From Chlorokybus atmophyticus (taxonomy: Eukaryota; Plantae; Mesostigma and Chlorokybus algae), in the NCBI GenBank assembly GCA_009103225.1, contig RHPI01001037.1:124001-188000 (forward strand): a stretch of DNA of 64,000 nt, in the 5' to 3' direction. The notes beneath the pieces were generated by a model. It was not told where the DNA came from, made no database searches, and saw only the letters and a program-made list of their open reading frames with translations. The translations under genes and the position numbers were made by a program. The first letter of the stretch is position 1; every line of letters begins with the position of its first letter. Shown one piece after another: positions 5,256 to 35,411 of this stretch.

Positions 5256-5267
5256 TTACACACGGTG

Positions 5268-5346
5268 TGTAACGGGAAGGTACATTATATAACCACAAAT
5301 CAACCATAAAAGCACTAAGTCTTTTGTGGTGGAGTGCGCTGTGACA
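5268..5346 (+). repeat. Extra 79-bp LTR of TRIM family 1
   Basis: TGTAACGGG...GTGACA, followed by a PBS-like ttggtattggag and then the next LTR at 5368. Confidence 0.85.
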
Positions 5347-5367
5347 TTGGTATTGGAGAGTAACCAA

Positions 5368-5898
5368 TGTAATGGGAAGGTACATTATATAACCACAAAT
5401 CGACTATAAAAGCACCAAGTCTTTTATGGTCGAGTGGGCTGTGACATTGGTCAACGGATTTTGAGACCCGGGTTCAATTCCTGCCTTGCACACGAATTCC
5501 GCGGTCGTTGTTTCTCGATCCAATAACATAACATCGTAAATGGTCAATTTATAAGTGCCATCATTGATAGGTCGCGACTTGCTTAATGGCAATCACGTCG
5601 GACTGACCAGTTCAGTCGGCGCGGCAGGACGCGACCTGCCCGTAGCGATGCGACCTGTGGGGCCGGCAGCGGTGCGCTTTTTGCGCGTTTACCGGTACGG
5701 GCCTAAAATAGCCGGTCCTTGGTCGTGGGGCTAGTGACCGACCCTAACAAACCCCTGGGATAATTCCCCAACTGAGCGTGGCAGCTGCCGAGGACGTCAG
5801 CATTTTTAGTGGGGGGGAATGTAACGGGAAGGTACATTATATAACCACAAATCGACCATAAAAGCACCAAGTATTTTATGGTCGAGTGGGTTGTGACA
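5368..5898 (+). mobile_element. TRIM family 1 (miniature LTR retrotransposon), complete copy
   Basis: 79-bp LTRs at 5368-5446 and 5820-5898 with TG..CA ends. PBS-like ttggtcaacgga at 5447. Polypurine tract gtgggggggaa immediately before the 3' LTR. 373-bp non-coding internal region. A partial internal region follows at 5899-6104. Confidence 0.9.
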
Positions 5899-6104
5899 TT
5901 GGTCATCGGAGCTTGAGAACCGGGTTTGAAGCCGGCCTTGCACACGAATTCCGCGGTCGTTGTTTCTCGATCCAATAACATCGTAAATGGTCAATTTATA
6001 AGTGCCATCATCGATGGGTCGTGACTTGCCTAATAACAGTCGCGTCAGACTAACCAGTTCATTCGGCGCGGCAGGACGCGACCTGCCTGTAGCGATGCGA
6101 CAAT

Positions 6105-6638
6105 TGTCACAGCCCACTCGACCACAAAAGACTTGGTGCTTTTATGGTCGATATGTGGTAATTCAATGTACCTTCCCATTACATTCCCCCCCCCCCACTT
6201 AAGAACGCTAACGTCCTCAGCTGGCTCCCATTAATTGGGGAATCATCCCAGGGGTTTTTGCTAGGGTCGGTCGCCGGCCCCACGGGCAAGGACCGGCTAA
6301 ATTAGGCCCATACCGATCAACGCGCGCACATCGCGCCGCTGCCGGCCCCACAGATCGCGTCGCCGCAATAGGCAGGTCGCGCCCTGCCGAGCCAACTCAA
6401 CTGGTCAGTTCGGCGCGATTGCCATTAAGCAAGTTGCGACCCATCAATGATGGCACTTATGAAGTGACCATTTACGATGTTATTGGATTGAGAAATAATG
6501 ACCACGGAATTTGTGTGCCAGGCAGGCTTCGAACCCGGGTCTCAAGCTCCGATGACCAATGTCACAGCCCACTCAACCATAAAAGACTTGGTGCTTTTAT
6601 GGTCGATTTGTGGTTATATAATGTGCCTTCCCATTACA
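6105..6638 (-). mobile_element. TRIM family 1, complete inverted copy
   Basis: 79-bp LTRs at 6560-6638 and 6105-6183. On the minus strand: PBS ttggtcatcggagc, G11 polypurine tract, 376-bp internal region. Confidence 0.9.
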
Positions 6639-9600
6639 CGATGTCACAATGTCACACAGTGCTTACCTTGTTGCCAATCTTCCACTTGCTTGGGGAAGGG
6701 TTGCCAACGGTCGAGGTTGCTACGTCACGGCCAAATGCGTTTGGGTTGGGGGTTCCAATCGACTCTCTGCAAGCACAACCACGTGAGTCATGCTGCTAGC
6801 CATAAAAGATGCAACCCTCACAGTTGAGCGAGAAGCAACGTGCACAGTGCATCTAAAACGCATGCAATAAGTCACTGTGCCAGTCACGAAAGAAGCAAGC
6901 ATAAAAGTTTGAAGTTGAGCAAAAAGCAACGTGCACAGGGCATTAAGAACGCATGCATTCCAGCTTGCCCTTGCGACTGAAGTGTCAGGTGGAGTTGTTG
7001 TGATGGGCTGGGCATTAGCGCGGGGTCTTGCTGCGATTGGTTGCCAAGAGTGGTTGCTGCTGGTTGGCAACGGTCGCCTGGTTGAACATTAGGGGCAATG
7101 TGAACTTGGGGCGCCGACCTCCACAACGAGGTGCACCTACAGATGGACCACGAGGCATCTCTCTAACTCATAGTCGAGTGCCGCCTGCTTAGCTAATGGA
7201 GTCGCTGCCGCCTCCAACGCTGCCGCCGCCAGTTGGCCCGCACAAATATACGAGGCGCAAAATCGAAAATGAGGCGGTTTTTAACGTCTAGTGCCCCACA
7301 CTAAAGTCGCACTTATAGTGCGTCCTTATCTCCTATGGTTGATGGTACGACCTATGCATTCGTACCATCCATGCTTCGTACAACCATCGGTAACAATGTC
7401 TGTGACGTAACAATTATGGTACGACAGAGGCATCTCTCGTCCAACCCCAGCCATTCGCGTACAATGGCTCGGTCGTACCATCTGTGATACATTAGAGGCA
7501 TTGCTCGACCAGCGCTAATGGGAGTTAGTGTGCACTCACTTAAACAGCTTCATTGATGGCCTAATGATGGCACGCATGGGCATAAGGTCAATGACGGGGC
7601 GAATGTCAGGCATGGTGGACCTAAGTTTGACTACGAGGCGGAGGACCGAGAGGAGTAGGAGGCGGCGGCGGCGGCGGTGTGGCACATCTTGCGAGAAGTT
7701 GTGGTCAAGAGCTCAAGGAGCGAAGCCAGCAAATACCGAGCGCCACGTCATAAATCATAGCAGGCGTCAGCAATGGGGCTGTCCAACATGCATCACCAAC
7801 ATTGGACAAACCAGCAGGCAAGCCATCAGTGACCATCGTCACACAGAGAGCTGCTTGGTGGCTCGCTTTCTGCAATAAAGAGTGAATTAGGAGCTGCAGT
7901 CTTGAGAGTCCCTTGCCAGAACCATGCGGGACCAATTGCGATTGCGGGAACAAGCACAAAGGAAGGCAGAGTTACGCTCAACAGTCACATGCATCTCCTT
8001 GCAAGAGCAGTTTGCTTTTTGACGCAGTCCATGTGATACATATAGTGTGGCTGCAGGCCTCCACTATTCACCCATACCCACCCCACAGTCAAGCCGACAT
8101 TGCGGAAGCCAGAGCAGATAGACAGCTGGGCGGCGGTATGTTGTTGCCAATCTCGCTGTGCATGTTGACTGCATGCACCTCTTTTGCATGCTAGGATGTG
8201 CGCGAGCGTGCGAAGTCGCGCGCTCGTGCCGAATGAAGTAGGCTGGGTTTGAGCATAGGAGCGCGTGGCCATTCAACCGGCATTCAACTAGTAGTGCATC
8301 ATCAGCAATCACGCAGTCCATGCAATCATTCGTGCATTAACCAGCAATGACGCAGGTAACTGTTCGAAGCAATCAACTGACGACTGTGTGACGCAGTTGA
8401 CTATTGCAATTGCATTGTCGCAAGCATGTAGCTAACCCATATATGATTGGTTGACAACACCACAGTGCATGAGGTCCTGTTGGAGCTTCTATGCAAGCCC
8501 TGATTCAATCCCATCAACTGGTCCTACAATCCCACTTGGTAATGGGCGCTGCGGCAATGCGGCATTTAACATGCATATTGGCCTGTTAAATCCCGACACG
8601 TCCATTGGGGCAGTGGCGCATCCTGTGCCCATGGCTCACGAGCTCCGTGACGCAACTGCGATTGAGGGTGGCGGGGAGAGTGCACCCAATACCACCTTGT
8701 CAGCCCCCATGGCTTCCCCTGCTCCATGCAGCCCACGGGCCATTGAGGTAAGTTGCTGTCTTTTATAATTGGGCCTTGGTAACAATGCGTCAGGCACATG
8801 CATATGCTTATATTCGTCCTTTGCAACATTGTGAGCCATCATATCCTGGGTCCTACATACAGCCCCCCTTGCTGAATGCACAAGTAGTCTCACCTGCCGC
8901 ACCTGCTCCCCTCGCAGCAAGAGGGCATTCACCTTCCGCGGCACTAAGCCTTCACGTGCACTGCGGTCTCCTCCACGAGCAGCATCGGTGACTGCGGGGC
9001 AGCAATTCTTCTTGCCGCAACCGGCGAGACCACAGCATGATGCAACAACCGATGTGGCTTCTGCACCTACCTTACCCCACCCGCTGCAAGTTGAAGCCGG
9101 CAGTCGGCCCCAAGCTCAGGTACTATATTAGTCACTGTGACTCTTGCCGTAAACAGTTGGACACACCATTTGAGTGATGTGTGCGCATGCAGCAGGGGTC
9201 ACCACCTGCCAGCGAGTCATATAAGGAGCAGGCCGCAACCTGTGTACAGCTTACAGATTGGCTGCGTGACCGTGTCTAGCGCGAGCATAGGGAGTGGGTG
9301 CCACGGCCCGGCAGCGCAGTTTGGGTTGGAAATAAAAAGCCCCCAACTCAATCCTGGTGGTGGGCAACACCGCTCCTGATGAGCTAGAAGCACACTTTTT
9401 GCTCCTCAAGCCTAAAAGCACCGAACAATGGTCGTGGCCTATGCATGAATTGCCACCGGAGGTTACAGACCTGATTGGAGAGTTGCGGAATGGCGTTGCC
9501 AATCCCCCACTACCACTAGCTGCTTCCCACGGTGCTGTGCCAACGCCTCAAGCCTTCGTGTGCTAGGCAAGAAGTAGCGAATTGTTTTGCTCATCTTGCC

Positions 9601-10129
9601 TCCCCTCAACCACATCCACATGCTCGCAATAACAATTTAGCACCCTCCCTTCCTGCCGCGGAGACTTACTTGCCACCGCACTCTGACCATCCGGAGGCAT
9701 CTTTATTACGAAGCAGCAGTAGCTTGCCATCTCCCTCTAAGCTTGCCACATTAATCCTAGCCTATTTTGTTGGTAAAGAGATTGATCGAGGTATCCTGAA
9801 ACTGGCGCCAAGAATAAAAGCTGCATGCTCGACCTTATGGCGCAACATGAGATCATGGAGGATCGGGAGGCAATCAACAAGCGCAAGGCTGTGGAGCAAG
9901 AAGATAACGCCTGACCTCCTCTGAGTGACAGTGCCGGAGAGCGCCTGCTAGGATGTGTAGGCCGACCACAAACAAAAGAAGAAGGTTGTTGGAACAAGGC
10001 ACGCTGATAGGACCCAAAAAGCAGAGGTGAGACATCGTCATGATGTAGTTAAAAGAAGCACATCGCCTTGAAGCCTCACTTGGACTGATTGTGTGTCCTG
10101 AGTAGGCACATGCGAGTTTACAGCGTCAT

Positions 10130-11060
10130 GTGGCTGCTCAGCATCGTCTAGAGAGACAGCCGGTGCGGCATGAGATGCCCAAGCTCAAACCACCGACGCG
10201 CAGACGCTTTGAGGGGCTGACTAGTAGTGCAAAGGAGTTAATCGCCCTCCAATACGCTCAAGATGCGCATCACCGCATGCGGCATGCCTTAAGGTGGGTA
10301 ACGAAAGTATGCAATGAGTGGGAGCAAACGCGGAGAGTGCGGTTTAAACAGACCTCTGGGGATTGGCCATGGTTGGAACCAAAACACGACATGACCATCC
10401 GTAGTACGCTATTGCCCTTCGCCAACCTTGATATAATGGTGTTGTTGCTGCCGCAGCAATCCGGCAATGTGCAAAAGCTATCCGCGGAGCAGAATGTCGA
10501 CCTGCTGCAACAGATGTACCTGTTGATGTCGACTAATGCGGATCGAGATTTGTGCCACTATTTGAGCAAAGATACCGGGTGGCAACTAAAACCATTCGAG
10601 ATGTACTTGGCATGCTTTGGCTGGCAGTGGCTGTGTGTCATACGGCACGTTGAGCTGATTGTGTGAAAGCTCGACGAAGATGATAATGCGGGCGAGTACA
10701 CGAGTTGACGGCAGCCATGTCGAGGGCTTGGATGAACGCATGCTGAACGAGACCATCAAGACTAGCAAATGGTGTATGGATGAACGCATGCTGAACGAGA
10801 CCATCAAGACTAGCATATGGTGGCGGCAGATGGGCGTCAGATGATTGAGCAGGCAGTAGAGCGTTATGTTGCACCATTGAGATGGGAGTCGCTGCGCCTG
10901 CAACGCGATAACAGAGTTTGGTGGCAGAAGCAGCTTGCACACCCGCGTGCACCATGTGTGCTGAATTGTCGCATTGAAGAGCTATTGATGGCTCCGCCAA
11001 GCTATGCCCTTACATGGCGGTGATGGTGAGGGTATGTGGCGTTTGGTGGATCGTTGGCGG
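10130..11060 (+). pseudogene. Degraded hAT-like transposase C-terminus
   Basis: Protein-like ORF 10130-10666 continues through stops and frameshifts to VWWQKQLAHPRAPCVLNCRIEELLMAPPSYA (from ~10916). This resembles the hAT dimerisation motif WW..P.L..A..LL..P.S. Coding-like decayed sequence extends from ~7540 to 11945. Confidence 0.45.
10731..10826 (+). repeat. 48-bp tandem duplication
   Basis: gatgaacgcatgctgaacgagaccatcaagactagca(a/t)atggtg occurs at 10731 and 10779. The duplication is in frame (DERMLNETIKTS x2). Confidence 0.95.
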
Positions 11061-12499
11061 CGCCGCCAGAGGCGTTGCGGGCGTTGTGGTCGAGGTCCGT
11101 GATGAAGCCACGTTCGCACATGGCTGGCAAGGTGCCGGTGGGGTGTCCTTGGTGGCAAACCCCACCATGCCTACTAAGGGCACAGCCAATGACAACAGTG
11201 ACTTGGGCGATATCTTACAGGGCTCCCCCTCCAAGTCGGAAAAGGCACACCACAATACTGCCTCTAAAATTATCCGACCCACCAGCAGCTGCGACCACGG
11301 CGATATGATTGAAGGGACCAAACAAGACTAGCATAACCAAGGTGGGTTACGATGCACTGTCAATGCCACATGCTAGGGTTTGATCTTGCACATGCACAGG
11401 CTCAAGTAGCTTGCACACGATATACACTGTTAATACCACATGCACAGCCTCCAGTGTCATGCACATGAACAGCATGACCATTCTTGCATATGCACAGCCT
11501 AGTTCTACTTGCGGGAGCTTACAAGTCGCAAAAGAGAAGCTGCGGAGTACCACGAACAAGTAATCCGTGACCTACTTTAATGCTTGTAGCGGCAGTATGC
11601 TTGCAGATTGCCATGTTGGTCAGACACAACGAAGAGCAGCGCGGCAGACTAACTATCTGCCTGGCGGAGTGCGACAAAGCGGAAGTCAAGGCAAGCATGC
11701 GTATGCTGATGGGCTAGTCCTCTGGCAGCATGCCACTCATATAGCATTACCAGATGCAGGTGGTCACTCTTAAAGCAACCATCAAGCGCATGCGCGTGCA
11801 CGGCGAGGTGCCGACATTTAAGCTGAAGCACGAGGTGGACGCTGTATTGTCAGCGAGCGAGGCCGCAGACGAAGGTGACTCCGATGTTGAAGCAGAAGAC
11901 TTGTTGGAGGAGAAACATGAGGAGGGGGTTGAGGAGGAGTTCTGAGGGAGGCACCACGGGTTGACAAGCTGCGCATGAGTGCGACAACTAGACTCAATGT
12001 CATAGGTAGTTTCTCGCAAGTCGACTGCTCAGTTGCAAGTGGACATACTTTCGCCACTGCTGGTATGTTGTATATATTGTTTGCTTATAGTTGCAAGACC
12101 AAACAATCGGTCCATGGTTTGTACAAGCTGCATGGCATGTTAGTGTTGGGTTACGGCAAGAATTGTCAACTCTTGACTTTCAAACGGTAAGGGTCATACA
12201 TCAACAGCAGTGTAACGGTAAAGGAACTTCAGGCTGTTGCTGTCAGCTGACCGTAACTACCGGCTAACGGCCGTTTGTGCATATTGACCAAAGGGTAACT
12301 GGTTTACAACTCTCGGCCGATCAGTGCCACTGACAACCACTTTCGGCCCGCGGCCGTCTGCGGCAATCCACATAAGCCAACGGCAAACCCAACAATCAAA
12401 AAGTGACATTTTACGCAACGGCAGGCAGGCTCGGGCAGGCTCAGACACCTATCAGTCACCCACAATCCCCGGTCAGTCACCGTGTAAAATTTGCGACGG

Positions 12500-15400
12500 G
12501 GGAACGCCGTCTTGGTGACACCCAGTGCGCCGTGTTCGTTGTCAACGACATGTATAGTGTCAGTTGAGAGAGAATGGCAGGGGTCTAGATTGGTGAGGTC
12601 AATGCCCAAGCTCCGAGCAGGATAGCTGCCCGCAAACTGGCTGAGCTCCGCCATCCGACAGGACACGTTTGGGCGCGCGTCCGTTGATCAGCACGTGCTT
12701 GCCAAGGTTTTCCACCATGATGACATTAGCATTGACCTGAGTATGGTTGTCAGGCTGGTAAGGAGTGCTGTCGTCAGGGGTTGAAGAATGCGGCAGCATT
12801 CTCAGCACGATCATGCCTCCTTTGTATAGAAAGCCCGGCGCGTCGAGGAAGATGGTGCAAGTGCCGATGATGCTGGGCCAGGGACGTATGGAGCATTCAC
12901 GCCTGGTGCGGGAGGAGGAGGAACTGTCTCATTTCAAGCCTGGTTGCCCCAAAGAGACATGCGCACGGCGTGGGCCACCTCTTAAACCATCATGCCTTCC
13001 CACGTGGCGGAGTTAACTCATAGAAGTGTCCTCGTACAACTCTATCTATGGCATTGGCAACAAATAGACAGTGTCGTTGGCGATGACGGTGGCTCCCAGC
13101 ATACTGTGGATGAACGCATCCCACTAACCATTGGTGAGGCCCACGTCGAGGATGGCCATTGCTCTGGCTCGCAGTGTGCCCTGCGTGTCGGTGAGCTCAT
13201 CGAATGTCGCGAGCGGCGTTCATGCTATCAATCAACCGTGCATACTCCGGCTTAGGCATGTGGGCAATGGCCTCAGCCACCCCTTTAACGCCCCAACGTT
13301 GGGTGCGTCTATATCGACCAGGGTGGCCACCTCATCGTACGCTTATGACGGACCGAGCGGGTGAAGGCACGGAGCCACTTCGGGCGAGAACGGAAGGCAG
13401 CCAAGGGTACAACGGCGTGGTGAGCGAACAACCAGGCGAGCAGCTGAGCACAATTGTCAGTGCTGCGGTTTATGTCTAGCAAGTTTCAAAAGTTAATGTC
13501 GGCTGGTGGGGGTTGTTGCAGCTGCTGTTTGCATCACCTGCCGGAGCAACTGAGCAACTCCTCGCTGCTGCTGTTCTTCAAAATTCCCAAGTCTCTAGCG
13601 GTGTGTTAACTATGTTGTGGTCCAAAAGTTCCCATCCCAAGGCATGCGGTTTTGAGCAGCGATGTGACTCAGCATGTTGGCAATGAGGTCTAAAAGGGAC
13701 ACCTGAAAGTAGCGTTCTAGCACGGGGGCATTGCGCTGTTTCAGCGCAGCTTGCTGTGCGGGCGTGACGACGATGACGTCTCCCACTCCTGCTTAAATTC
13801 TTCCACGGTTGAGTCTGGAGACTCACATCCCGTCCCCTCTTGCTGACGCTGCTTGTAGTCCATCCACGCTGCGTGACGGTCCTGCAAGACTGCCTGCTGT
13901 TGTGATGAACACCAGTAGTGAGCAGGGCATACAATTGTCGAACATGGTTCTCAAAGGATGTACGGCGCAGCGCCGCATCAATACTTAATGGTGTAGCTGC
14001 CAATACATGTATTGCAGCGCAACGTGCCTGCGTAAGGTCATCGCCGTGGGCCAGGTTGCACGGATTTCGTCGTTGCGAACGTAGTGGTGCCGTTTGCTAT
14101 GAAGCCCCACCCTCCCTCTGATTCCACACTGTAAAAAAACAGAATGAGCGCGTGGGTGGATAAATGTGGGTCTGAAAGTACAAACCCGCGCAAGTTGCGT
14201 TATAAAAGCGGCACCCCCGTTCCTGCCAACACCTCATCCTCTCGGATTTCGTATTCCAGGTTGGGTGTTGGTGCAGCCAAGAAATCGTGGGTGGAGTGTG
14301 CTCCTAGGTGTTGCACTGGCAAGGGCATCGTGGCGCCTAGGGTGGTGGTTTCAGCAGCAGTAGTAGCAGCGGTTGCGACAATGGTGCCTATGCCCACAGG
14401 CATGGGCACAACGACAGGAGATGCCATGGTTGTGGCCGAGAGCAAGAGTAAAGCCTCGCTCGATTGGTGATGAGGTGGGCTCAATTGCTTCAGCGAGCGC
14501 GCCGGCGAGGACCGCTTCTCCGCTGGCCGAAGGAGCTTGCAGCGCGGTGCCTGCCCCTGATGCTGGTGTGGTTGCAGCAACGGGCTGACCTGCTGTAGAC
14601 GGGCAAGCGCCAGATGCTGCTGCGCAGGCACTCTGAGTGGTTGCAGCAGCTGCGGCGAGAGCGTCCCGATTTGCTTGTGCTTTGTCTTTGCGCTCTTTGA
14701 GTCTGAAGCTGCGGTGTCGTTGACTAGACATCGCCTAGCGAGCAGAGTAGCAAGCCTGAAAGTCACCATCCCGGGCCTGGAGCTGCGCTTTCAACTCTTG
14801 AATGCGTGCTGTCATGGTATTTGCGGCTTCTGAAGCCTTGACCGCTAGCAAACGTAGTGCTGCAGCAGCGGCGCTGGGGCGAGCGTTGTCAGCCTGATGC
14901 TGTGGAGGCCGGTTGTTACCTTAATAGCCGTTGCCTTGGCGGGCTCCCGCATTGTCGTGTTTAGCGTTGTTGTTGTTGTTGTACCCGTTGTTTGGCCTGA
15001 ACTCTGGAAACTAGGCATAGCGCACTGTCTCCAAGTGACCAGTCTTGTGGCAATGTTCACATACCAGCGCAGCGTATTCCTCTGTACATTCCTTGTTATA
15101 GTGACCGTGCCGTCCACAGCGATGGCACATGACTGGAGCAACTAGAGTGGCGTGAGCTGCATGAGGTGGTCCTTTTAATAGGTGGTCCCTTTGGTGGCGG
15201 CCTCGTAGGCAGCTGATCTTGTGCACGCTCTTAGCGGCTTGGCTCAGGTGCTGTTGAGGCTGAGAGCCGTGAGACAGTGCAAGTGCCATCCAACACTGCC
15301 TTCTCCCAGACTTGTCGGTCACAAATTAACAGTGCGGCTGCTGATGGTTGCTGCAGCGTGTATCCGCATGGATGAGCGCCGTTCAGCGTTATGCGAACAT

Positions 15401-16525: not shown

Positions 16526-16721
16526 AGTAACTGCAGCCTAGCGTGTGTATGCTCTTGCCGCTATGGCAACGACACTGTTCACTTCGCCCGCTAGTGACTG
16601 TGCAGCCCACTATATGGTGACAATGACAGTTAATGCCTTGAGGTGTAACAAAAATTGCAAGCTGCAATGTATTAATGCCGAATGCAAAACCACTCACTTG
16701 TTGCAAAGGGGTGAAACTATG

Positions 16722-17316: not shown

Positions 17317-17359
17317 ATGTGGGTAACAATAGCAACGGCAGTTCATTATCTCAGCCGTC

Positions 17360-20924: not shown

Positions 20925-23900
20925 ATGCCGATGGACGAGGATATGGAGATGGAGCATGTACCTTCATCAGTTCCAACGGAGGAGGCGCCGTCCGCCGCTA
21001 CGCTGAAACATAAGGAGAGGCATTACAGGAAGAAGGACGGCGACAGGGAGGATGCTGATGGTGACGGTGCAGGCAGGGAGGAGACGGATGCTGAGAGGCA
21101 TGAGCGTCATCAGCGCCGACGTGAAGAGAAGGAGAAGAGACGAGAGGAGCGTCGTAAGCATAAGGATAAAGACAAGGACAACGATAAAGACCGGCACAAA
21201 GACAGGTGGGTGTTTGAGGCGCGTATTGAAATACTGTCATTTGCCGTGCATGTATGGTAATTACAAAAGCCGCTCTGTTGTTGGCTATGAATCTGCAGCT
21301 CTTCGGTGTGTGGCATTACCGTGTTTGTGCCTGCAAGTATGCTGATTAGAACATGAACAGGACGATGAGCTGCTTGCATAGCATGATCGCACTGGAGAGC
21401 TGATGTTAGGTACACCACGCGCGTTGTAGTTCTGTCGCTTTGCTTTGCATGTGTGTGGTGTTACTGACGCACACCCTAGGCACAGTCGGAAGGACAAGCA
21501 CAAGGACAAAGAGCATCGTCATAAACGCAAGGATGGCAGCACTGACGTTATTGCAGCGGATGGGCTGAAGCCCGATGCTGGTGTCCCAGAGTCTCCAGCT
21601 GTTTCGGCTGCTTGGACTGAAGCTGAGAACTTGGCGGTTGTCAATGGCAAACACGATGGCGAATCATTGGAAACACGTCGTGACCAAAGGCATGTTCAGG
21701 AAAGGAATGGTCCAACTCATGATGAGCACATAAATCGCGATCTCGGCAGGGAAGCAAGAGCAAACAGCCGCGATTGTGTCGAGCGCAGCAGGTCTGCTTC
21801 ACGTGATGTTGTGGATGAACCAGCCAGAGAAGTCCGAGCTAGAGAAACTTCTCGGGAGAGAGGTGAAAGGAAGCGCGATCGCAGTCGGGAACGCAGCCGC
21901 GAACGAAGCCGCGACCGGCAAGACAGGTCTGCGGATCCTGATAGGGACGGACGCAGGGAGGAACGTGGTAGGGGCAGACCGCGAGAACGAGATGATGAGC
22001 GCCTTGAACGAGACAAAAGCCAAGATCATGGTGACAAGCGCAGTGAGAGGAAAGCCAGAGACGACATCTCTCACAGAGACAAAAAGCGACGACCGGAAGC
22101 GCATGATGACAGCAGAAAGCATCAGCCTAGCAAGGAAGAAGTTGCTGTACCACAGGTCTGCTTGGCCATTTGCTGCATATCGTGTACTTATGCCGTGTAG
22201 GCAGCGCACTCATCAGTGTCAACTGCAGGAGACACCAAAAGACACTCTCAGTGCAGAAGAAGAACAGGCAAGGGTGGAAGCAGAGATCGAGAAGAGAAGA
22301 AAGCGAGCAGCGGAGTGGCAGGTGAGACAACATGTTGTTGTGTTGTGCTCATGACAGGATGACGTTGAGTAGGAAGCTGTGGGAAGGATGCGTGCCTGCT
22401 GTGCATCTTTACGTTGTTGTGCTATATATTAATCTTGCTTTTCCCCAGCGCATGAGACAGCAACAAGAGCAGGAGGCAGCCGCAGCACAGGCAACAGAGG
22501 AGCCCGAGGCAAACCGACAGCAGTGGTCCTTGGAGGGAGAGGATGAAGATGCTGAGGGTGAAGCCGCAGCTGCGGCCGCAGCTGATGAGACTGCTTTTGA
22601 TGATGCACGGTATGGATGTGCCATGTGACTTTGGTGGGAGGTGGTTGTGACACTTGGTCGTTGTAAGGGGTGATGTTTTTGCTAATTTGCTGGCTTCTAT
22701 CAGGAACTTTCCTAGTGTTGTCAAGCAAGAAGACGCCGGTGTCGCAGATGTCTTTATGACAGACGACAAGGCCACCTCACAATCAAAGGCAGCAGAAGCT
22801 GTCCCTGCTGCAGAGCCTGAGGATGATGTTGACCCACTCGACGCATTCATGGCTGCAGAGGTACTGCCAGAGGTTGCACGTCTGAAGGCAGCTGAAAAGC
22901 CAGCTGCACCAGCCGTTGCAAGCGTTAAGTCAGCGCCGCAAGCCCAGTCATCACGACGCGATTACTTTGTGGCTCCACCCAGCAATACTGCAGGTTCAAC
23001 GAAGGGTGCAGTTGTTTCTGAGGCGCAATCTGACGAAGACTATGCTACGTCTGAGAGCGAGCAGTCTGAGGGCGAGGATGAGATTCTGAAGAAGTTGACA
23101 AAGCAGAGCAAGATGGACAAGCTGGTTGCTGTTGATCATAGCACAGTGAGTACAGTGTGTGCACAGCCACTTACAGACACTGTGCACTTGTTCGCAGTCA
23201 CAGTTTACAATCAGATAGGCTTTTTGTGCATTCTTGCCGGTTCATCGGTGGTGATGTCCTGCAGATCAAGTATGAGGCGTTCAGGAAGGACTTTTATGTC
23301 GAGGCGCGAGACATACAGCGCATGACAACTGAAGAGGTCACCGAGTATCGTCAAGAGCTTGGTGGCATCAAGGTGCGCGGGAAGAACTGCCCAAAACCCA
23401 TAAAGACTTGGTCACAAGCGGGACTGCCGTCGCGTGTCTTGGACATTTTGAAGCGTAACAACTTTGACAAACCCATGCCTATCCAAGCACAGGCTATGCC
23501 TGTCATCATGAGTGGCCGCGATTGCATTGGCATCGCAAAGACTGGATCTGGCAAAACACTGGCCTTTGTTTTACCAATGCTGCGGCATATCATGGATCAG
23601 CCTCCGCTAATGCAAGGTGATGGCCCCATTGGCTTCATCATGGCCCCAACCCGCGAGCTTGTGCAGCAGATCTATTTTGACATCAGGCGCTTTGCCAAAG
23701 TGCTGAACCTGACTGCTGTATGCGTTTTTGGCGGCTCCGGCATAGCAAACCAGATTACAGATCTCAAGCGAGGCTGTGAGATTGTTGTCTGCACGCCTGG
23801 TCGCATCATTGACATTCTTTGCACCTCTGGAGGCAAGATAACCAACTTGCGAAGAGTTACATACGTGGTGCTTGACGAGGCTGACAGGATGTTTGACATG

Positions 23901-25568
23901 GGGTTTGAGCCTCAAATAACACGAATCCTGCAGAACATGCGACCAGGCAAGCAGACTGTCATGTTCTCCGCCACATTTCCACGTTCTGTTGAAGTCCTTG
24001 CCAGGAGGGCTTTGACCGCGCCTGTTGAGATTCAGATTGGAGGTCGTAGTGTTGTCAACAAGGACATCGAGCAGGTTGTGGAAGTACGCCCAGAGGATCA
24101 ACGGTTCCTTCGCGTGCTTGAACTCCTCGGCGAGTGGTATGAAAAGGGCAAGGTAAGCTGAGTCATGCTCAAGGTCATGCAATGCTCCAGCGTCAGTGGT
24201 GATCAATGGTTTTCTTGGGCATTGCATGATTGTCTGCACCGCAGGTGCTCATTTTTGTGCAAACACAAGAGAAGTGTGACACCTTGTTCCGGGAACTCCT
24301 GAAGCATGGATATGGATGCCTCAGTCTACACGGTGGCAAAGATCAGTCTGATCGCGAGTCTACCATACAGGATTTCAAGAGCAATGTGTGCAGTTTGCTG
24401 ATAGCAACAAGTGTGGCTGCACGTGGTCTGGATGTCAAGGAGCTGCGGTTGGTTTTGAATTACGATGTTCCAAACCATTACGAGGACTACGTGCATCGTG
24501 TTGGCCGCACCGGTCGCGCTGGCAACAAGGTATTAGCATTCACTGTGTTCACGATTCAGCACTTGCAGTTCCTACGCCTGAGAAGGTTTCATCAGCAGTT
24601 TGTGCTGCGCGCAGGGAACTTCAATTACATTTATTGCGCCAGACGAAGACAGATACGCACCAGATTTGGTGCAAGCCTTGGAGTTGTCAGGGGCATCCGT
24701 TCCAGAGGACCTTAAGAAGATTGCTGACGAGTTTGACAAGAAAAGGCAGGCGGGATTGGTACATGCCCATGGCAGCGGGTATGGTGGCAGTGGCTTCAAG
24801 TTTGATGAGCAAGAAGAGGAGGCACGCAAGCAGGATCGCAAGATTCTGGCGTTGGAGTATGGGGTTGCCTTGGGAACAAGAGATGATGAAGACAGCGATG
24901 AGGACGATGAGGTGTTTAAAGCTGGCACCTTGCAAGAGAAAGCTGAGAAAGAGCGCCTTGCTGCAGCCGCTAAAGCTCAGAGCGCGACTCCGGCGCCACC
25001 TCCTGACAGCATGGAAGCAAAGGTTGCTGCCGCGCGCGCAATGGCAGAGCGCATTGCTCAACAACATGCAGAAAGGGCCAAGACGAATGCAAATGCACCG
25101 AGAATCGCTCAGTTGCAGGCTCAGCAAGTAGCATTGCAGGGCATTCTAGATTCAGAGGGGCCGGTCACTCAGGCTGCCAAGGCTGCTGCTTTTGCGGCTA
25201 TGATTACTGTGAAAGCAGAGTTGGGTAAATTGCTTGAAGAGCCCGAAGGAGGGCATGAAGCAGAAGTTGAGGTCAACGACTTCCCACAACATGCTCGCTG
25301 GAAGGTCACACACAAGGACTCGTTATCTCAGATTACCGAATACACTGGGGCTGCTATTACCACTCGTGGGCAGTACTACCCCACCGGCAAAAACCCACCA
25401 CCTGGCGAACGCAAGCTGTACCTTCTTATTGAGGGTCCTACTGAGATCAGCGTCAAGCGTGCCAAGGCTGAGATCAAACGCATACTTGAGGAAGAGACAT
25501 CCAAAGTTGCTGGAGCTTTTCCCGGCCAGCCCCAGCTACCTGGACGCTACTCTCTTACAAATGGCTAA
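20925..25568 (+). CDS. PRP5: DEAD-box RNA helicase PRP5/DDX46 (RH42-like), multi-exon
   Basis: Arg/Glu/Asp-rich N-terminus. Helicase motifs [61 protein letters not shown]-terminal [31 protein letters not shown], typical of PRP5. Confidence 0.96.
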
Positions 25569-26599: not shown

Positions 26600-28245
26600 C
26601 ACAAATACACATCTATTGGCTACAAAACACCTTAAGACCACAACAACAACAAGCCCAACATGTCAGCAGCAAGTGCGCCACAACGCTTCCCTCACCTGTG
26701 CTAGACTGCCTGCCCATGCATAGGGTAGAGTAATGGGGCCATTGGTAGCATAGCAAGCAAGCAATGCTAAGTCATGCACTTCATGCAATCAATGTGTTGT
26801 GGTTGTTTGGGTTGAACGTGCAAAGCCTGCTACCATGCCTCAAGCTTCCATTGGTAATGGGTATAGAGTAGGACGCACTGCTGGCGGTTGCAGCCGTGTA
26901 GATTGGTTGCGTTCTAGGGTTGTATGCTGTGTGTTGTGCGGTATGCATGGAGTGTGATACGTAGCATGCACACACTATCAATGTATTAGTAATGAGAGGA
27001 TTGACAATGGATATACCATATGCTATGCATCTGCCACTCAAAAAAGCGTATGTAGCGCACAGGTCATCAAAGAGGCCCAGGAGTGCATTTCCGTTTGGTC
27101 TTTCTGTTTGCTCACACCAATACACAAATATGCACAGTGTTGTGTGTTTGTTGTGTACGGTTGGTTGGTGGCAATTGGGTGTGGTATGATATCACTTACA
27201 CCGGACGCTTGTGTGTCACTAACAATAGAGGTGTCGCAATATACACATATGCACATGGTTCCAATGCCACTCGCTCGCTACTGTCAATCAGACCTATTGT
27301 ACACATAACATGTCAGATTTGCTGTTTTGGCCGCTGTCTCCACACAACCTCTTGTACCTACGGTCTTGCACTTGCACTTCATTCACGTAGACTAGAGAAG
27401 AGTCCCTGTAGGCTACAGGTGGTCGTGTGCGAATAATGTGTTGTGCATTATGTTATTTGGTTGTGATTTTGAAGCTTGGCATCGTGTGTGGCATGATGTT
27501 TGTCTATAGCCTATGATGCGATCCCGATGACTACCTTCAATACATGCATGAGAGGCAACTGTGCACAGTGGAGGCAATTGCCGTGCCACTCGTCACGTGT
27601 TGCTTCTCTGGAACTGGCGCATGTTGCTAGCATGATTCTGGCTGCACCATAATATAGCTTGAGATTAATTATTCCCTTTGTGCACTTTATGCATGGGGTA
27701 CAAGTCATAGAGAAAAGCAGACAACCCAGAACCAATTACACAGCACCACAAGTAGCAAGCAGACCAGGAACGGAGACAGGCAAGAGCAGTTAAAATTATG
27801 GGCCATCATTGATGGCAGGGGCATTACAACTGAGTACGCTATGTGCACTATGTGCTCTAGGCGGGGCGGGGCATTAGGATGTAGTAATCAGCGGCAAGCG
27901 ATGCATGGAAGGCGCATGCAGCTTGCATGGTGCTGACCTGGGGCCGTCAACACAGTGAGCGAAAAGTGAGCCCTCGAACGTGGACGTGGACGTGGACGGC
28001 AAACGCAAACGATGACAACTCCTCCACGCTTGCTTCCATGTAGCACATTTGTAGCACATTAACTCCAGGCGTTTGGCGCGGTCATCTGGGCGGGGCGGCG
28101 GTGGCATCGTGGTCGTCACCCTCGACGACCTCAGCTTCGATGGCCGCAGTGTTTGCGACTGCCTCGCAGCACGCAGCAACAAACGCCCTGCTGCCGGAGG
28201 CGACGAGAGCGCCACACCGGCCGCTCCGCAGCAGCAGGCAACCAC
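26600..28245 (-). CDS. Possible multi-exon gene for an unknown protein with a transit-peptide-like N-terminus; exon structure unresolved
   Basis: ORF 27874-28245 has an Ala/Arg/Ser-rich start and ends at a GT donor (GGCCCCAG|gtcagc). Several short AG..GT-bounded coding-like segments follow (e.g. ALLGLFDDLCATYAFLSGRCIAY; QCVLLYTHYQWKLEA). Confidence 0.3.
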
Positions 28246-28479
28246 TCACTAGGAGGTCAGCAACTGATTGAATTCAGCTCAATCAACAAGCCTTGAAGAC
28301 TGTGATAGACATTTTTGTACCGCAACATGGACGCAGCAGTGTGTTTTACTACGCACACCTTGCTTAAATTTTTGCTTAACCTGCTCAACATGCAAGTGCA
28401 TGGCAGCATGCATGCATGTTCTGACTAGAATGATGGTTACACTAGTCGAGGTGGGGGTGGTGTTGCGAAGGTGAGGGCA

Positions 28480-29062
28480 ATGGTTGCGTTGCGGGTGGAG
28501 AAGTGGGACGAGGCGAAGCACGGCCAGCTGTCCGCCGACAGGATGGCGCGCCTGCTGGCTTCTGAGGGCTACTCCGTGCAGCGATACACCTTCCGCCCAG
28601 GCACAGTGTTTTCAGGCAAGAGTTTGGTGGTGGTTCACTCAGTCAGTATTGCAAACTTGCTGATGTGATGCATGCAAGCACGCATGCACGATCAGGGCGA
28701 TGATGAGTAACACTGCGCAGACCATTCGCATGGGTGCTCAAAGAAGGATTCTATTGTTGCTGGCCGCTTCTTGTTTCGAATGGGTGGTGAAGAGGTAGGG
28801 ACGGCGCATCAGGTGTGGTCATGCACGCATGCGATTCAAGGCGTGAATCACCCGTGTTTGTGTCTTGCAACTCACCTGTTGTGCGCAGACTTGTCAGTGG
28901 GTATGCATGCTCTTCTTGCACATGTGCGTGTCATGCCTTGAAGGCCCGCTTGCGCAGGTGGTGTTGGAGCCAGGAGACATGTTGGACGTGCCAGCTGGCG
29001 CCACACATTATGCGGAAGTTGTCGGCGACGAGCCTGTTGTATTCTTCGATGCCTCCAAATAA
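28480..29062 (+). CDS. Small cupin-domain protein (104 aa, 3 exons: 28480-28615, 28721-28794, 28958-29062)
   Basis: Spliced product MVALRVEKWDEAKHG..YTFRPGTVFSDHSHGCSKKDSIVAGRFLFRMGGEEVVLEPGDMLDVPAGATHYAEVVGDEPVVFFDASK. Contains the cupin HxH motif and the PGD..VPAG..H motif. Exon lengths sum to 315 nt. Confidence 0.88.
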
Positions 29063-29500
29063 TGGGATTGCTACCTTGAACAGCTCTTTACAGTAGAAGT
29101 TCTACTGTAGAGAGCTGTGCAAGGTACAGAAGAATAAAAACAAGGTCAAACATACTGTACGCCATCATTTGTTGACGCGTGTGTATATGGTAAATAGATT
29201 GCACAAACAGTGTATTACCCTGTGTATATAAACCACATGATCGCGAACGCGGGAGGCAACTGAGAACCTATTGGGCCTGTGTTATAACCTGCATGCCCCT
29301 TTGCCAATGCACCACCTTGTTATGCTGTCAAATGGCATTGGAGGCCATCAAATAATTGCATATCATTACAAATGCTTCTATTATTCAGTTGCGTAATTTC
29401 CGGCAACTATTGGCATTGCATCGGTGCTAGCAATGGCAGCTAGCACACAAGTAACTATCTATCTATGCTCGACAACATGTACCCGAGTGACACCCGCGTG

Positions 29501-31970
29501 TCAACCAGCAGGCGCAACTGTGGGTGCCGTTTGCGGTCTGTGCTGGTGGCCGGCCAGCAGCTGCGCCTGCGCTGAGAGAAGCTGCCACTCGACCTCTTCT
29601 TTCCGCTTCATGAGCCCGATGTTCAGCTGCTTCTGGTGCTCCCCTTCCCCGTGCAACTCCTCGACACGCGCCCACAAACCCTCTATCTCCGCGGCCTTCT
29701 TGCTGACCTCCTCCTCAAGCTCCTGCACTCGCCGCTCCATGGCGGCCACCGACACGCGCGCGGATATCAACTCTTCGCGCAATGAGGACACGTCGTGTGC
29801 CAACACTGACGCTTCTGCTCGGGAAGCCTGCAGCTCTGCAGCCGTCTTTTCTGCCGACTCTGCTGCCGCCGCCATTGAACCCTCCACAGCTTGCAACCTC
29901 TCCTGCTTCGTATAGCAGATCAGTGAACAGAACAGTCATAGACATATCTACAACTGTAGTCTGTCCTACACATAGTACAAGTTGCGTGTATGCTAGTGAA
30001 TGATATTGCCCTTGCATAATATTGCATAGTGCACCTCACAACATCCATGTTACCAGCTGTGTCCTTGTCGTAGATGCTTGGCACATGCACACATCACAAC
30101 AATACAGGTATTCACGAACAAACAAATGGAACAACAACAGGCAACAGCAACCTGTGCAGCGCGGAGCTCCTGTTGCGCATGTTGTGCTTCACCCCACACA
30201 GCACGCGCCTCCTCGGCAGCAGCAGCGGCTTCGCTGTGAGCGGCGGCAAGGGCAGCCGCTTGCTCTTTGTCCCGCTGCTGCTGAGCTCGCAAGGACTCCT
30301 CCACGGCAGAGCGCGCACGGTCCAACCATTGCGCCTGTGTATGATTACCTTAGCAACAATCTTCCTTACAACACAGACAGGTTAACCCATAAACCCCCAC
30401 ATTGCGTGGTTATTGATATGGAGGTGTCCCTTGCCTGCTGATGGCGCATCTGCTCTTCGTACTCTCTTCTTGAGCGCAGGGCAGCTGCGGCCTCCTCCTC
30501 ACTGCCCTTGACCCTCACCGTCAGCATCACATTGTCCGCTTTTAGCCTAGCGGCCGCCTGCTGCTGCCGTGCCGCAGTTGCCTCCGCTGCTGCAACCCTC
30601 TCCTCTGCGCTCCTGCAAGAAAAAAAGCAATTGAATCCTGCCCATATGAGACTGATGACAAATTGTCTTTGAACACTGTTGTGCTTACCTGACGGTGGTG
30701 TTGGCCGCTTCAGCCCTCCTCTCTGCTTCCAACCTGGCTGCTGTCGCTGCCTCCGCATCAGCACGAGCGCGCTTAGTTTCTTCCTGGCAACGCCGCTCGC
30801 GTTCAAGTGACTCCTGCGATTCTGCAGGCGTTAGCGCCTTGCTATGCTCAACTGCGTGCAATCACTAAAAGCAAAGTGTGCAATGTGCATTCCTACCGCA
30901 AGTTGCTGCTGAAGTTGAAGCTTCTCGTTCGTGACGCCCTTTACTGCTGCGGCCGACTCTGACGCACCCGCAGCGCGCTGCTCTCCAAGCAAGCGCTCTT
31001 GCTTTAGCAGGCGCTTCTGCAGCTCTTCAAGCTGGCGAAAACAACTACACATAAGCACGGCCTCACAACCGACGGCAAAAACACAATGTCAAGTGTCCAT
31101 GTAAAGGGCTAGCTTGCATGGGATTGCCACATATGTAATGACAGCTTAGCACAGCTGCGGCTACTCGACACATTCCGCATGTCAGTAAGAAACACGGCAT
31201 GATTTATCTGGGCTTGTAGAGCAATCCGTCAAAAGCAGAAAACGGAAGTGCACGCTTGCAAACAATGTCACCTTGTGGATGTGTGCAACGCATTCGTGGC
31301 TTGCCACACAGCTTGATCTGCAGATTCTAACACCCGAACTGTGTTATCGATGAATACACCATGTATGCTACCTCAAGAAAGCCATCGCATGCGTGCTGAC
31401 CGTACTGCATGACCTTATGGACTGTCAAACACAACTCATACCACAGCTGGGTGTGTTTGAGACAATAACCTGTGTCTGGGCTTGTCCCAGCGCCTCTAGC
31501 CGCGCCTGCTGGCGGGTGGCATCATCCCTGGCCCTGCCCAAGGCCTGCGTGAGGCGGGTGAGGGAAGAATGAGCGGCGGCGGCGGCACGCTCCGCCTGGC
31601 GCTGGGCGCGCCTGGAGCTTGCAGTAGGGTTTGAGTAACCGCCGCTGGTGGTGGCTGCAGAGGAGCCTTGCAGCAGCTTGTACAGCGCCTCGACAGCGTC
31701 GGCGACGGCCTCGGCGGCGGCTGCGGCCGCCTCCCAGGCTTCCTGCGCACGCTCCTGGCTGTCGTGCCTGGCCTGGGGGTTAGCCTGGCCTGGAGCCTCC
31801 TGAGGGCCAGGGGCGGAGTAGGTATGACCGGTTGCGGTGGAAGGGGCGGTGGTGGTGGAGGCGACCGGCGCCATCGACGACACGTGGCGCTCAGCACGGG
31901 CGTGTACTGTCCTGGCGTCCGGGGACACGGTGAGCGCCTCGCTCGCCGCCCCGCCCGCCCTTGCCGCCAT
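29501..31970 (-). CDS. Ala/Glu-rich coiled-coil protein of unknown function, multi-exon
   Basis: Series of heptad-rich minus-strand exons (31970-31470, ~31040-30900, 30800-30690, 30610-30430, 30325-30150, 29910-29501) bounded by GT/AG. Confidence 0.7.
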
Positions 31971-32619
31971 GGTTGGTGCCGCCAGACCACCGACCGTTGG
32001 ACCATTCAAATCACTGGTACGGGTAGTACCATTGGTAGGTTAAATAGAATTTCGAAAACTTTCAATCGCCTCATCATGTCAACTAGCCTAGTTGAACTAG
32101 GGTAAGATCGCCTTACTCCGGACACTTTTACGGGCAACGGTGCTGTCAGGTTTGTGATATGGTAAGATGTGTGATTTTTTGTGTTTGTATAAATGGGCAG
32201 TTGGGCTGTCTGATGTCGTTGATATAGCATTGTTTGGTGCAGTGCAGCGTCAGCTCTGCGCCCCCAAAGACCAGTGTGTACTGACAGGCGGGTAAGATTG
32301 GCTGCTCATAATTTTGGACGGCCTGTTTTGCGTGCAGTGTTGGTAAGGTGGTGATGTTGGTGGCGGTGGGGGTGGCGGGAGAGTGCATGGCGTGAGTTGT
32401 GGGTCATTTGCAAGCAAGGCGGGCCGGCGTGGCAGTGGTTAGCTAGTCTTAAGGGTAAGTGCTAGGCATGCATGCAAGCTGTGTGTGTGCATGGTTGTGT
32501 GTTGTGTGCATAGTTGCATTGCACTGTTGCACAGTGTACAAGGGTTGTTATGTACAAGGTCTGTTAGTCTAGACGGGTAGTTGGCTATTAAAGTTCTGCT
32601 CAGCTAGCCACTGGTAGTG

Positions 32620-35340
32620 ATTTTGTACACGCATAGCAGCCTCATGCGCAGCTTGTTGCCTTGCTGCCACCGCTGCCTTACGTGCTTGCTCCGGCCTTGC
32701 AGCCTTCAGTTTGGCCTCCTTGACGAGGCGCTTCCCCTCAGCAAGCGCTGCAATTTATCCTAAATCGTGACAGACCTCACTCATGGTAGCGTCTTTTGCT
32801 ACCATAGCCTAGTGGTTGGAGCCCACTTGCTACAATGGTAACGGAACTTGACGTCACAGGTTCAATTCATGCAGGGGACTGAGGCAGATTTAAACCTTAC
32901 CTTGAAGGCAAAAAACATTTAGGGCGGCTTTGTCACGAATTGGGAATAAATTGTGACAGACCTCGCTAATGGTAGTGTCTTTGAGTACCATAGCCTAGTG
33001 GTCGTGCCCCAATCGTTACAATGCTAACGGAGCTTGACGTCTCAGGTTCAATTCGCGTAGGGAACTGAGGCAGTTCCAAGGCAAAAACAAAAACATTTAA
33101 GGCGGCTTGCCCTAGGCTGGGCGCGGGATCACGACCTGCGCGGCGAGCCAGTTCAACCTAAGGCCGCGCGAGCGGTCGCGCTGCGATGGCAGGTCGCGCG
33201 GTGAGGATGGCTGTTCAGTCGGTCAGGACCGTTCATAGGCCAAATCCAACAGGCCGCGTGCACACCGATCGTGGTACGGCCGTGACCACGGCGACGTGGG
33301 CTAGTGCTCATTGTAGACCCCATGGGTTCAATTGGGGAGGAATGTCACATTTAGGATAAATCGTGACAGATCTCACTAACGGTAGCGTCTTTTGCTACCA
33401 TAGCCTAGTGGTCGGAGTCCACTTGTTACACTGCCTTGGCGGCGTTAGCGACCTTACGCAGAGCCGCCTTCTTCAGCCTTGCCGCCTCTTTGGTAAACTA
33501 CTGCTTCGCCAGCTCTTTCATCCTTGCAGCTGCTACTTCCTTGCGTTGTTGCTCAGCCTGCTCCTTGGCTAACTGTCTGTTTTTTTTGGCCTGCAGGTAG
33601 CGAATGAGCTCTGGCGAGATGAGAATGCAGGCGCCATCCAGCTTGTGGAACTCCTCTTCCTCCTCCTCCTCTTGAGCCTCGCCCCCCCCGTACTCCTCCT
33701 GCCATGTTGACTGGCCTGCATCCAGCAAAGCAGCAGTAAGGGCATCCCCTTGCAGAGGTGGCTGTGCTGCATGCTCTGTGATGTCAACTCTGAGCTGGTT
33801 GTCCAGTGCATGCCTGTTTCCTGGCCACAGCCCTGCACAGGTGTTAGTCTCGTGTGTGTATGCATTTGCTGTGCTTGCATGTGTGTGTATGCATTTGCTG
33901 CCTCTCACCACATGCTTTTAAGCCATTCGTTATGTTGGTATAGGACGTTGCCAGCATGAAAGGCTTTGCAGTCAACTTTACAAACTTACCCTTCGTCATG
34001 CGGTCTAGGTTGTTGTCTGCCTTATGCTTGTGGTGCTCTGCACGGTAACAAGCCTTGAAACTGGCAAAACACATTCAAGACTTGCATAAGTGGAGGTAAA
34101 GTTATACATAGTGACTTGGTTGGTGTGCATGCCTTTGTGTGAATTGAATTGTGTGTGAATTAAATTGCCTGCGTGTGATTTGCTAATCTGCATTGCGTGT
34201 GGCAGGTGGGGGGCAAGAGGATGATGTGTACACCGCGATCTCTGGCTCTGATGATAAGGTCTAGCTGCATTCTGCTGCTGTGGCCATTGATGACGAGGTT
34301 GCAAGGGTTGTCTATGCTGGCACCACCAGGTACCCACTTCATAAAGTGCTCAAAGCAGGCTGCAAAGATCTCATTCGTCATGTAAGCGTTCTCCTATTTC
34401 ACACAGCACAGGGTGAGCATTCAGAGCTCGCATGGCACAAGCACAGCACTGCATATGCGCCTGCATGCCAACCATGCTGCTTATGGGGGCATACCGTATG
34501 TAGTCCTTTGTCCTGCGTTGGCCCTTGAGTATGTATAAGGGGGGCATGCTTGTCTCAGCAGCAGACATATATGCCATAATGGGGATGTGCTGATGGTTCC
34601 CCATCTTCATATGAGAAGGGTGATTGTACCCTCTGGGTGCAATCACTTTTACAGTGCCTACATATGTGTGCATTGTCAGTCTTACACTACACGGGTGCAT
34701 GAATGCCATTGCTAACATGTGCTATGCTAACCTAGGTTGTCTGGCTCCAGACCTGTCTCATCTGCATTGAAGATCCTCCATGCAGGGATGTCTAACTCCG
34801 GCAGCGGAAGGTATAGGTCAAAGAACTTGTCAGCGTTGCTACGTGTGGCAGCCCTGTGGTGACCTTTGTCCAGCCCCTCAGCTACTCTTCGGGTCAAGTT
34901 TTACTTCTTGAAGTAGAGACGGCACCACTTTGGTCCAAGCAGCAGCAGTTTGCCAAACCTTTGCAGTCTCTCTTCATCCCCCCTCAGCAATTGCAACACC
35001 TAGTAGGTAAGCAATGAAGTTAGGTGAATTGCTTGCTTTGCACAACAAACTTGCATTAGGCATAACACACTTGCTTGTCGTTGCAGAGCGAACACTGTGG
35101 GATCATGATCAATGTGTCACACATCTTGTGCACCCACTCACATAACTCGCGCTGCTCAGCTATGGTCAGGATGGCAGCCTTGCCAGGGCTGCAAGGACGT
35201 GTGAGCTTGTCTGGGTCGTACAAGTAGACAGACAGGGTGCTACGTGGCACCCCAATGCTAATGACTGCCTTCAAGGCAAGTTGCACGAGCAGCGATACCA
35301 CTCCTGCCTAGATCTGCTTAATGGCCTGAGCAATTTGAGC
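32620..35340 (-). pseudogene. Intron-containing pogo-type DDE transposase pseudogene
   Basis: HTH GVPRSTL..EQRELCEWV, RIFNADETG (first catalytic D), SMPPLYILKG, LVINGHSSR (second D to N), ILLPPTCHT..QVLNV..FASFK (third D apparently N), and a basic coiled-coil tail. Contains stops and a TRIM insertion. Confidence 0.85.
32752..33430 (+). mobile_element. TRIM family 2, tandem/nested structure: LTRa(5'-damaged) - partial internal - LTRb - internal - LTRc
   Basis: LTRa ends at 32834. LTRb 32931-33020 and LTRc 33343-33430 have TGTCAC..GTTACA ends. PBS-like atggtaacggaac / atgctaacggagc. PPT ggggaggaa. CTGC duplication at 32748-32751 and 33431-33434; removing the insert restores the transposase frame AAKAALAEGKR. 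Confidence 0.9.
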
Positions 35341-35411
35341 AAGGGATTCTTCTTTTGCTGCCCATGAGATATGTATGCCTGATTCGGGGGGGGGGGCTTA
35401 AATTTTTGCTT

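Follow-up and report, generated by a model that had tools for sequence, protein, structure and literature searches.

Two TRIM families in a 64-kb window of Chlorokybus atmophyticus

We analysed a 64-kb stretch of DNA from the streptophyte alga Chlorokybus atmophyticus (contig RHPI01001037.1, positions 124,001 to 188,000; hereafter the window, in whose coordinates all positions are given), which contains two families of short repeats, at 5268-6638 (family 1) and 32749-33430 (family 2). Both families are non-autonomous retrotransposons with long terminal repeats (LTRs) of the type called TRIMs (for terminal-repeat retrotransposons in miniature). Their units measure 531, 534 and 500 bp, below the 1 kb that bounds this type, with direct LTRs of 79 bp in family 1 and 86-90 bp in family 2. 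All LTRs of both families have TG..CA termini, TGG is found 1-2 nt past the LTR end, and the purine tracts AGTGGGGGGGAA and GGGGAGGAA abut the 3' LTRs. The open reading frames (ORFs) over the elements are chance ORFs without a Pfam match, and family 2 has no ORF of at least 70 aa. Where a leader follows an LTR, motifs resembling the A box and the B box of a tRNA-type promoter for RNA polymerase III (Pol III) lie on opposite sides of the LTR border, an arrangement that may represent a promoter split by that border.

Family 1 forms a cluster with five 79-bp LTR copies, mutually 87-93% alike, in the order LTR a, a 21-nt internal remnant, a complete 531-bp unit, a cut internal region, and a complete inverted unit. 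Its features are as follows, with T4 standing for a run of four T:

5263..5267 and 6639-6643 (no strand): CGGTG and CGATG, imperfect 5-bp repeat around the whole cluster
5268..5346 (+): LTR a, 79 bp, A box decayed
5347-5367 (+): internal remnant after LTR a, 21 nt
5368..5446 (+): LTR b
5386-5392 (+): TATATAA in LTR b
5400-5433 (+): hairpin in LTR b
5422-5425 (+): T4 in LTR b
5427-5437 (+): A box TGGTCGAGTGG in LTR b
5447..5819 (+): internal region of unit b, non-coding
5448..5464 (+): primer-binding-like site, its TGG starting two nt past the LTR end
5464..5490 (+): leader segment derived in sense orientation from the 3' half of a tRNA-Gly-type gene
5471-5481 (+): B box within the leader; the majority of related contigs read GGTTCGATTCC
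5808-5819 (+): purine tract AGTGGGGGGGAA
5820..5898 (+): LTR c, both 3' LTR of unit b and 5' LTR of the truncated next unit
5879-5889 (+): A box in LTR c
5899-6104 (+): truncated next unit after LTR c, internal region cut off at 6104
5923-5933 (+): B box behind LTR c
6105..6638 (-): inverted complete unit, T4 runs only in its LTRs
6105-6183 (-): 3' LTR of the inverted unit
6525-6535 (-): B box of the inverted unit
6542-6558 (-): primer site of the inverted unit
6560-6638 (-): 5' LTR of the inverted unit
6569-6579 (-): A box of the inverted unit

A 45-nt direct repeat, 87% identical (6822-6866 and 6913-6957), adjoins the cluster on the right, and none of the ORFs flanking family 1 matches Pfam. 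Family 2 consists of an LTR, a short internal region, a second LTR, a full internal region and a third LTR:

32748..32751 and 33431-33434 (no strand): CTGC, 4-bp target duplication flanking family 2
32749..32834 (+): LTR a
32794-32797 (+): T4 in LTR a, with a hairpin around it
32805-32815 (+): A box TAGCCTAGTGG in LTR a
32835-32930 (+): short (deleted) internal region behind LTR a
32836-32851 (+): primer site behind LTR a
32859-32869 (+): B box behind LTR a
32931..33020 (+): LTR b, T run decayed to three T
32991-33001 (+): A box in LTR b
33021..33342 (+): full internal region, free of T4
33022-33037 (+): primer site behind LTR b
33045-33055 (+): B box behind LTR b
33334-33342 (+): purine tract GGGGAGGAA
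33343..33430 (+): LTR c, followed by host DNA and hence without a B box
33390-33393 (+): T4 in LTR c
33401-33411 (+): A box in LTR c

The family 2 insertion lies inside a minus-strand open frame rich in Lys, Ala and Glu (32389-32751 and 33431-33911) that has no Pfam match.

The elements are mobile. Excision of family 2 together with one CTGC copy yields a minus-strand frame that continues across the empty site. For family 1, contigs of three public runs turn to unrelated sequence exactly at 5368, 5820, 5446, 6105 and 6639; with the LTR borders fixed by these independent insertions, the B box lies truly outside the LTR. An empty form of the family 1 site is represented by contigs of two public runs that join 5263 to 6642, with 10 other letters at the joint. 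Since the depth over the flanks of the cluster (5200-5263 and 6642-6700) reaches ~110-150 in two runs, these cluster-free contigs probably represent a paralogous copy of the repeat that the cluster entered. One public run, from another organism code, is diverged throughout (all contigs <99% alike), and a 340-nt contig from it runs from an internal end through a whole LTR and the leader into the internal region (matching 5782-5978 and 6336-6477), indicating that family 1, including tandem or read-through forms, is present in a diverged relative. Within the window, we found no further copies of either family and no helper whose primer site matches. A degenerate pattern of the junction had four matches among metagenome contigs, all of them in unrelated sequence and chance-like.

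A and B boxes on either side of the LTR border

We scanned both strands of the whole window for A boxes (TRGCNNAGTGG) and B boxes (GGTTCRANNCC), allowing at most one mismatch in each and a spacing of 30-60 nt. Five A/B pairs were found, compared with 0.16 expected from Markov simulations, and all five are located at LTR/leader junctions of the two families. The A box differs from the consensus by one mismatch in family 1 and is exact in family 2; the A and B boxes are 44 nt apart in family 1, as is canonical for tRNA genes, and 54 nt apart in family 2. At all five junctions, in family 1 and family 2 alike, the B box begins 24 nt beyond the LTR end. We conclude that the A and B boxes are not due to chance. 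The junctions of both families follow one order, namely LTR hairpin, T4 in or beside the hairpin, A box, LTR end, TGG, a primer site ending in GGA(G/A)CTTGA, and B box, bearing out the layout described in the initial annotation of this DNA. A TATA-like element (TATATAA or ATAAAT) lies 34-36 nt upstream of T4 in both families. Because the B box is outside the LTR, both boxes occur only where a leader follows, as that annotation had also recognised: five of the eight LTRs have both, and a 3'-terminal or solo LTR would consequently be promoter-dead.

The stretch from the primer site to the B box is the only part of the two families that aligns between them above chance (z 5.0). Neither their LTRs (z -0.1) nor their internal regions (z -0.2) align better than shuffles. 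The short internal motifs that had been listed as shared therefore did not hold up, the two 8-mers in common being at chance level. Upstream of the purine tract in both families (5715-5775 and 33296-33342), CGTGG(G)GCTAGTG is followed after 14-16 nt by ACCCC(A)TGGG; the order and spacing of this pair are the same in both, the alignment is not significant, and the pair may be a shared cis signal.

The primer site had been described as like that of an initiator methionine tRNA, a description that its sequence does not support, with TGGTC in family 1 and TGGTA in family 2. The former would presumably suit a tRNA with a C1-G72 pair, such as Tyr, and the latter an initiator with A1-U72; the downstream block common to both families argues against two different primers. 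We also considered whether the B box could be an antisense copy of the T arm of the primer tRNA, the alternative that the initial annotation had itself set against its proposal. This reading fails, since the B box occupies +22 to +32 from the first base of TGG whereas the complement of the T loop is expected at +17 to +23, and since the bases flanking the B box are not self-complementary in that register.

Aligned with the 3' half of rice tRNA-Gly (reference sequence from bioRxiv 10.1101/046417), the family 1 leader at 5464-5490 has a local score of 20, compared with 6.7 +/- 1.4 for shuffles (z ~9), and an 18-nt exact run spans the variable loop and the T arm. Judged by this match, the family 1 leader is derived from the 3' half of a tRNA-Gly-type gene. 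Only the A box is kept of the 5' half, with the primer site occupying the position of the anticodon arm, and family 2 keeps only GGTTCAATTC of the tRNA-like sequence. With the rest of the tRNA decayed, the decay has been uneven and has spared the B box.

We then compared related contigs from three public runs at 80% likeness. The changes reported here are among the 40 of 100 variants listed, and are thus indicative and not a conservation test. Changes at 5476 (A>G), 5927 (T>C) and 5930-31 (AG>TT) give the perfect B box GGTTCGATTCC, and changes at 5454 (A>T) and 5459-60 (TT>GC) give the majority primer site TGGTCATCGGAGCTTGA. A change at 5679-82 abolishes an internal run of five T, and 5873 A>C brings back CTTTT. 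Related contigs thus carry the common form where the window copies deviate, and the private internal T runs are gone.

T4 is present in seven of the eight LTRs, and each LTR has a hairpin centred on it; in family 1 the stem has 13-14 bp, with z ~-4 in four of the five LTRs. Sense-strand T4 is confined to the LTRs in the two best-kept units, for which the T4-free internal regions of the initial annotation are thus confirmed, and runs of at least four A occur one to two times inside these units. In model RNAs that extend from T4 to T4 and have identical LTRs, the 5' end pairs with the 3' region (P ~1), and the family 2 model combines GCUACC/GGUAGC pairing with a GUCUUUU trailer, like the acceptor stem of a pre-tRNA. 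Folding did not predict this pairing in the actual, decayed copies of the window. The panhandle that had been proposed for the RNA ends is therefore, as far as these models go, geometrically implied for intact copies only.

Elsewhere in the window, an ORF at 1805-2242 (-) encodes a domain that Pfam assigns to C-5 cytosine DNA methylases (E 1.9e-08), for which we found no link to the TRIMs, and a host gene between the two TRIM loci, at 23157-25568 (+), encodes a helicase domain of the DEAD-box type (E 1.5e-49) as well as a KH domain. Runs of N mark gaps in the assembly at 35411-35614 and 36459-37053.

Proposed Pol III transcription and its rivals

We propose, giving it about an even chance, that the template RNA of both families is made by Pol III from a tRNA-derived type 2 promoter cut by the LTR border. 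The A box is situated within the final 20-30 nt of the LTR (its unique 5' region, U5), the primer site replaces the anticodon arm, and the B box follows 24 nt past the LTR end. TFIIIC would bind the A and B boxes, TFIIIB would be placed over the TATA-like element ~35 bp upstream of T4, and transcription would start at or around the T4 of the LTR. Pol III would then run through the ~400-nt T4-free body and stop at the same T4 in the 3' LTR, giving an RNA of ~410-460 nt with a very short terminal repeat. The ends of this RNA would pair via the split LTR hairpin, and the reverse transcriptase of a Ty3/Gypsy helper would copy it using the primer site and the purine tract, rebuilding the LTRs. We infer the use of Pol III, the start and stop sites, the pairing of the ends in vivo and the helper from sequence. 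A fuller version, which we hold tentatively and put somewhat short of even, is that the Pol III promoter exists only where LTR meets leader because a tRNA-Gly-type Pol III transcript gained a primer site at the anticodon arm and, close to its end, a purine tract. The 79-90-bp LTRs would have been built from the ends of that RNA by Gypsy-type reverse transcription; the ends would be closed by acceptor-stem-like pairing with a pre-tRNA-like oligo-U trailer, and 3'-terminal and solo LTRs would be silent.

Several observations weigh against transcription by Pol III or against particular steps of it. The usual geometry of tRNA genes, with a start 10-15 nt before the A box, places the start just upstream of T4 in both families, so that Pol III would have to pass T4 in the first ~12 nt of the transcript. 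Such a passage would be eased by the leakiness of T4 as a terminator; the scaffold of the single-guide RNA (sgRNA) carries one. The start originally proposed, at or just after T4 with a minimal repeated (R) region, fits family 2 (a G, with the A box at +8) and sits poorly with family 1, where the A box would be at +2. The R region would be at most ~7-12 nt, compared with the 18-nt terminal duplication of the Pol III transcript of Cassandra (PMC10886601). As ~1 T4 is expected per unit, the absence of internal T4 has little statistical weight (P ~0.3 per family and ~0.1 for both families together). ARAGORN found no tRNA genes in the window at its default settings, and the Rfam tRNA model had no match at E up to 10; at 80% thresholds ARAGORN does call the junctions, unspecifically, with 44 calls per 64 kb. 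RNAalifold predicted no cloverleaf at the five junctions. The TATA-like element could serve either polymerase, RNA polymerase II (Pol II) included, and in both families the GGUUC of the B box is able to base-pair with the primer site's 3' half, which could offer a promoter-free reason for part of its conservation. Finally, there are two independent families only, mostly of decayed copies.

Some of these observations would be expected if both families were ordinary TRIMs in which a TATA-like element in the unique 3' region (U3) drives Pol II, the tRNA-derived segment being a relic of the capture of a tRNA-Gly gene or of a tRNA-derived short interspersed element (SINE), with no present role as a promoter. 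We regard this explanation as rather unlikely, though it deserves to be taken seriously. It accounts for TATATAA or ATAAAT ~30 nt upstream of the region around T4, for a T4 awkwardly near any Pol III start, and for a cloverleaf so decayed that neither ARAGORN nor Rfam recognises a tRNA, and TATA boxes are found in Cassandra-like TRIMs without a 5S promoter (PMC10853983). A relic should decay evenly, however, yet the B-box block still matches a tRNA exactly over 18 nt and has the canonical form in the majority of related contigs (among the variants listed), and a second, unalignable family retains both boxes with the same offset. The 79-90-bp LTRs, moreover, have no clear polyadenylation signal downstream of the presumed start.

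Conservation of the leader block could also reflect a signal for reverse transcription or packaging, and not a promoter, with primer-site hairpins held in common with the helper element: GGUUC with the primer site's 3' half, and the LTR end with the start of that site. The block is the sole part conserved between the families, RNAalifold predicts both hairpins on the five junctions, and the stem of LTR end and primer site differs between the families by one compensatory pair, G-C in family 1 and U-A in family 2, while the second stem shows only wobble-compatible changes. We nevertheless consider this explanation improbable: the consensus structure is weak (-7.6 kcal/mol) and comes from two independent lineages only, and a signal of this kind leaves unexplained the A box, the B box in its 3' half, the exact spacing of 44 nt between A and B, and the tRNA-Gly identity of the block. 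Chance resemblance in short repeats merits almost no credence. The motifs are indeed short and degenerate, and tRNA-like calls are common at relaxed thresholds, but five pairs where 0.16 are expected per 64 kb, at one structural position in two families, and a tRNA-Gly match at z ~9 are hard to reconcile with it.

Comparison with known systems

Helenus, with a tRNA-like sequence in its LTRs, and Ajax were described by Kojima in 2024, and the name TRIMp3 has been proposed for TRIMs with Pol III promoters, of which Cassandra is the sole validated case (PMC10886601). The initial annotation knew of no described TRIM with such a split tRNA-type promoter. TRIMs with a tRNA-type promoter are already on record as Helenus (PMC10886601), and the split layout is what stands as new; a full-text literature search found no paper on such a layout or on TRIMs of Chlorokybus. 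The boxes of Helenus were judged functional from their conservation (PMC10886601). In the elements described here, the corresponding findings are the A/B pairs, the tRNA-Gly leader and the canonical B box in related contigs (among the variants listed). By their sequence, the elements thus appear to resemble the TRIMp3 class, with the split layout as the new part.

Helenus is the closest in kind. It shares with the present elements a short non-coding LTR structure, a primer site, a purine tract, target duplications of 4-5 bp, and tRNA-derived A and B boxes without a functional tRNA, and its Pol III promoter is likewise presumed from conservation only. It has one known plant member, in Selaginella, whereas the host here is a streptophyte alga. 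The LTR of Helenus contains the entire tRNA-like sequence including both boxes, so that both LTRs and solo LTRs are promoter-complete; by contrast, the tRNA-like unit is here split by the LTR border and the primer site, with the B box 24 nt outside the LTR. The LTRs are also shorter, at 79-90 bp compared with 120 bp in Selaginella and up to 323 bp in the longest Helenus. Because the B box is outside the LTR at all five junctions, the elements fall outside the definition of Helenus.

Cassandra, of land plants, is likewise a TRIM with a Pol III start in the 5' LTR, an end in the 3' LTR, a short terminal duplication and tandem arrays, features that match what we infer for Pol III in the present families. 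Its promoter is of type 1 (5S), however, and lies with the terminator wholly within longer LTRs. We detected no similarity to 5S rRNA in our elements (no Rfam match, whether at the gathering threshold or with E relaxed to 10), which sets them apart from Cassandra and Ajax. Canonical Pol II TRIMs ("TRIMp2" of Kojima) are alike in size, in the succession of LTR, primer site and purine tract, in the absence of ORFs and in LTR-internal-LTR-internal-LTR arrays, but have no promoter boxes of small-RNA genes. Arrays of this tandem kind are familiar from TRIMs and from Cassandra (PMC13570524). In practice, such elements inflate tRNA-like and promoter-like matches in algal genome annotation.

If the split Pol III promoter works, only the upstream LTR would fire and solo LTRs would be inert, which would solve the two-LTR problem without an extra signal. 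The elements would then also test how short an R region, and how near a terminator, reverse transcription and Pol III tolerate, and would hint at how an LTR element can arise from a SINE-like RNA. Like tRNA-derived SINEs (SINE2), they have a tRNA-derived head with A and B boxes and a unit of Pol III size, and would need an autonomous retroelement. Unlike them, they have LTRs, a primer site and a purine tract, and so are not SINEs as defined, which lack all three and are copied by long interspersed elements (LINEs) via target-primed reverse transcription. A working split promoter would thus make these elements a genuine hybrid of SINE and LTR retrotransposon as well as the first Pol III TRIM to be reported from an alga, and would add a third Pol III route for LTR-type parasites to those of the 5S LTRs of Cassandra and the tRNA LTRs of Helenus.

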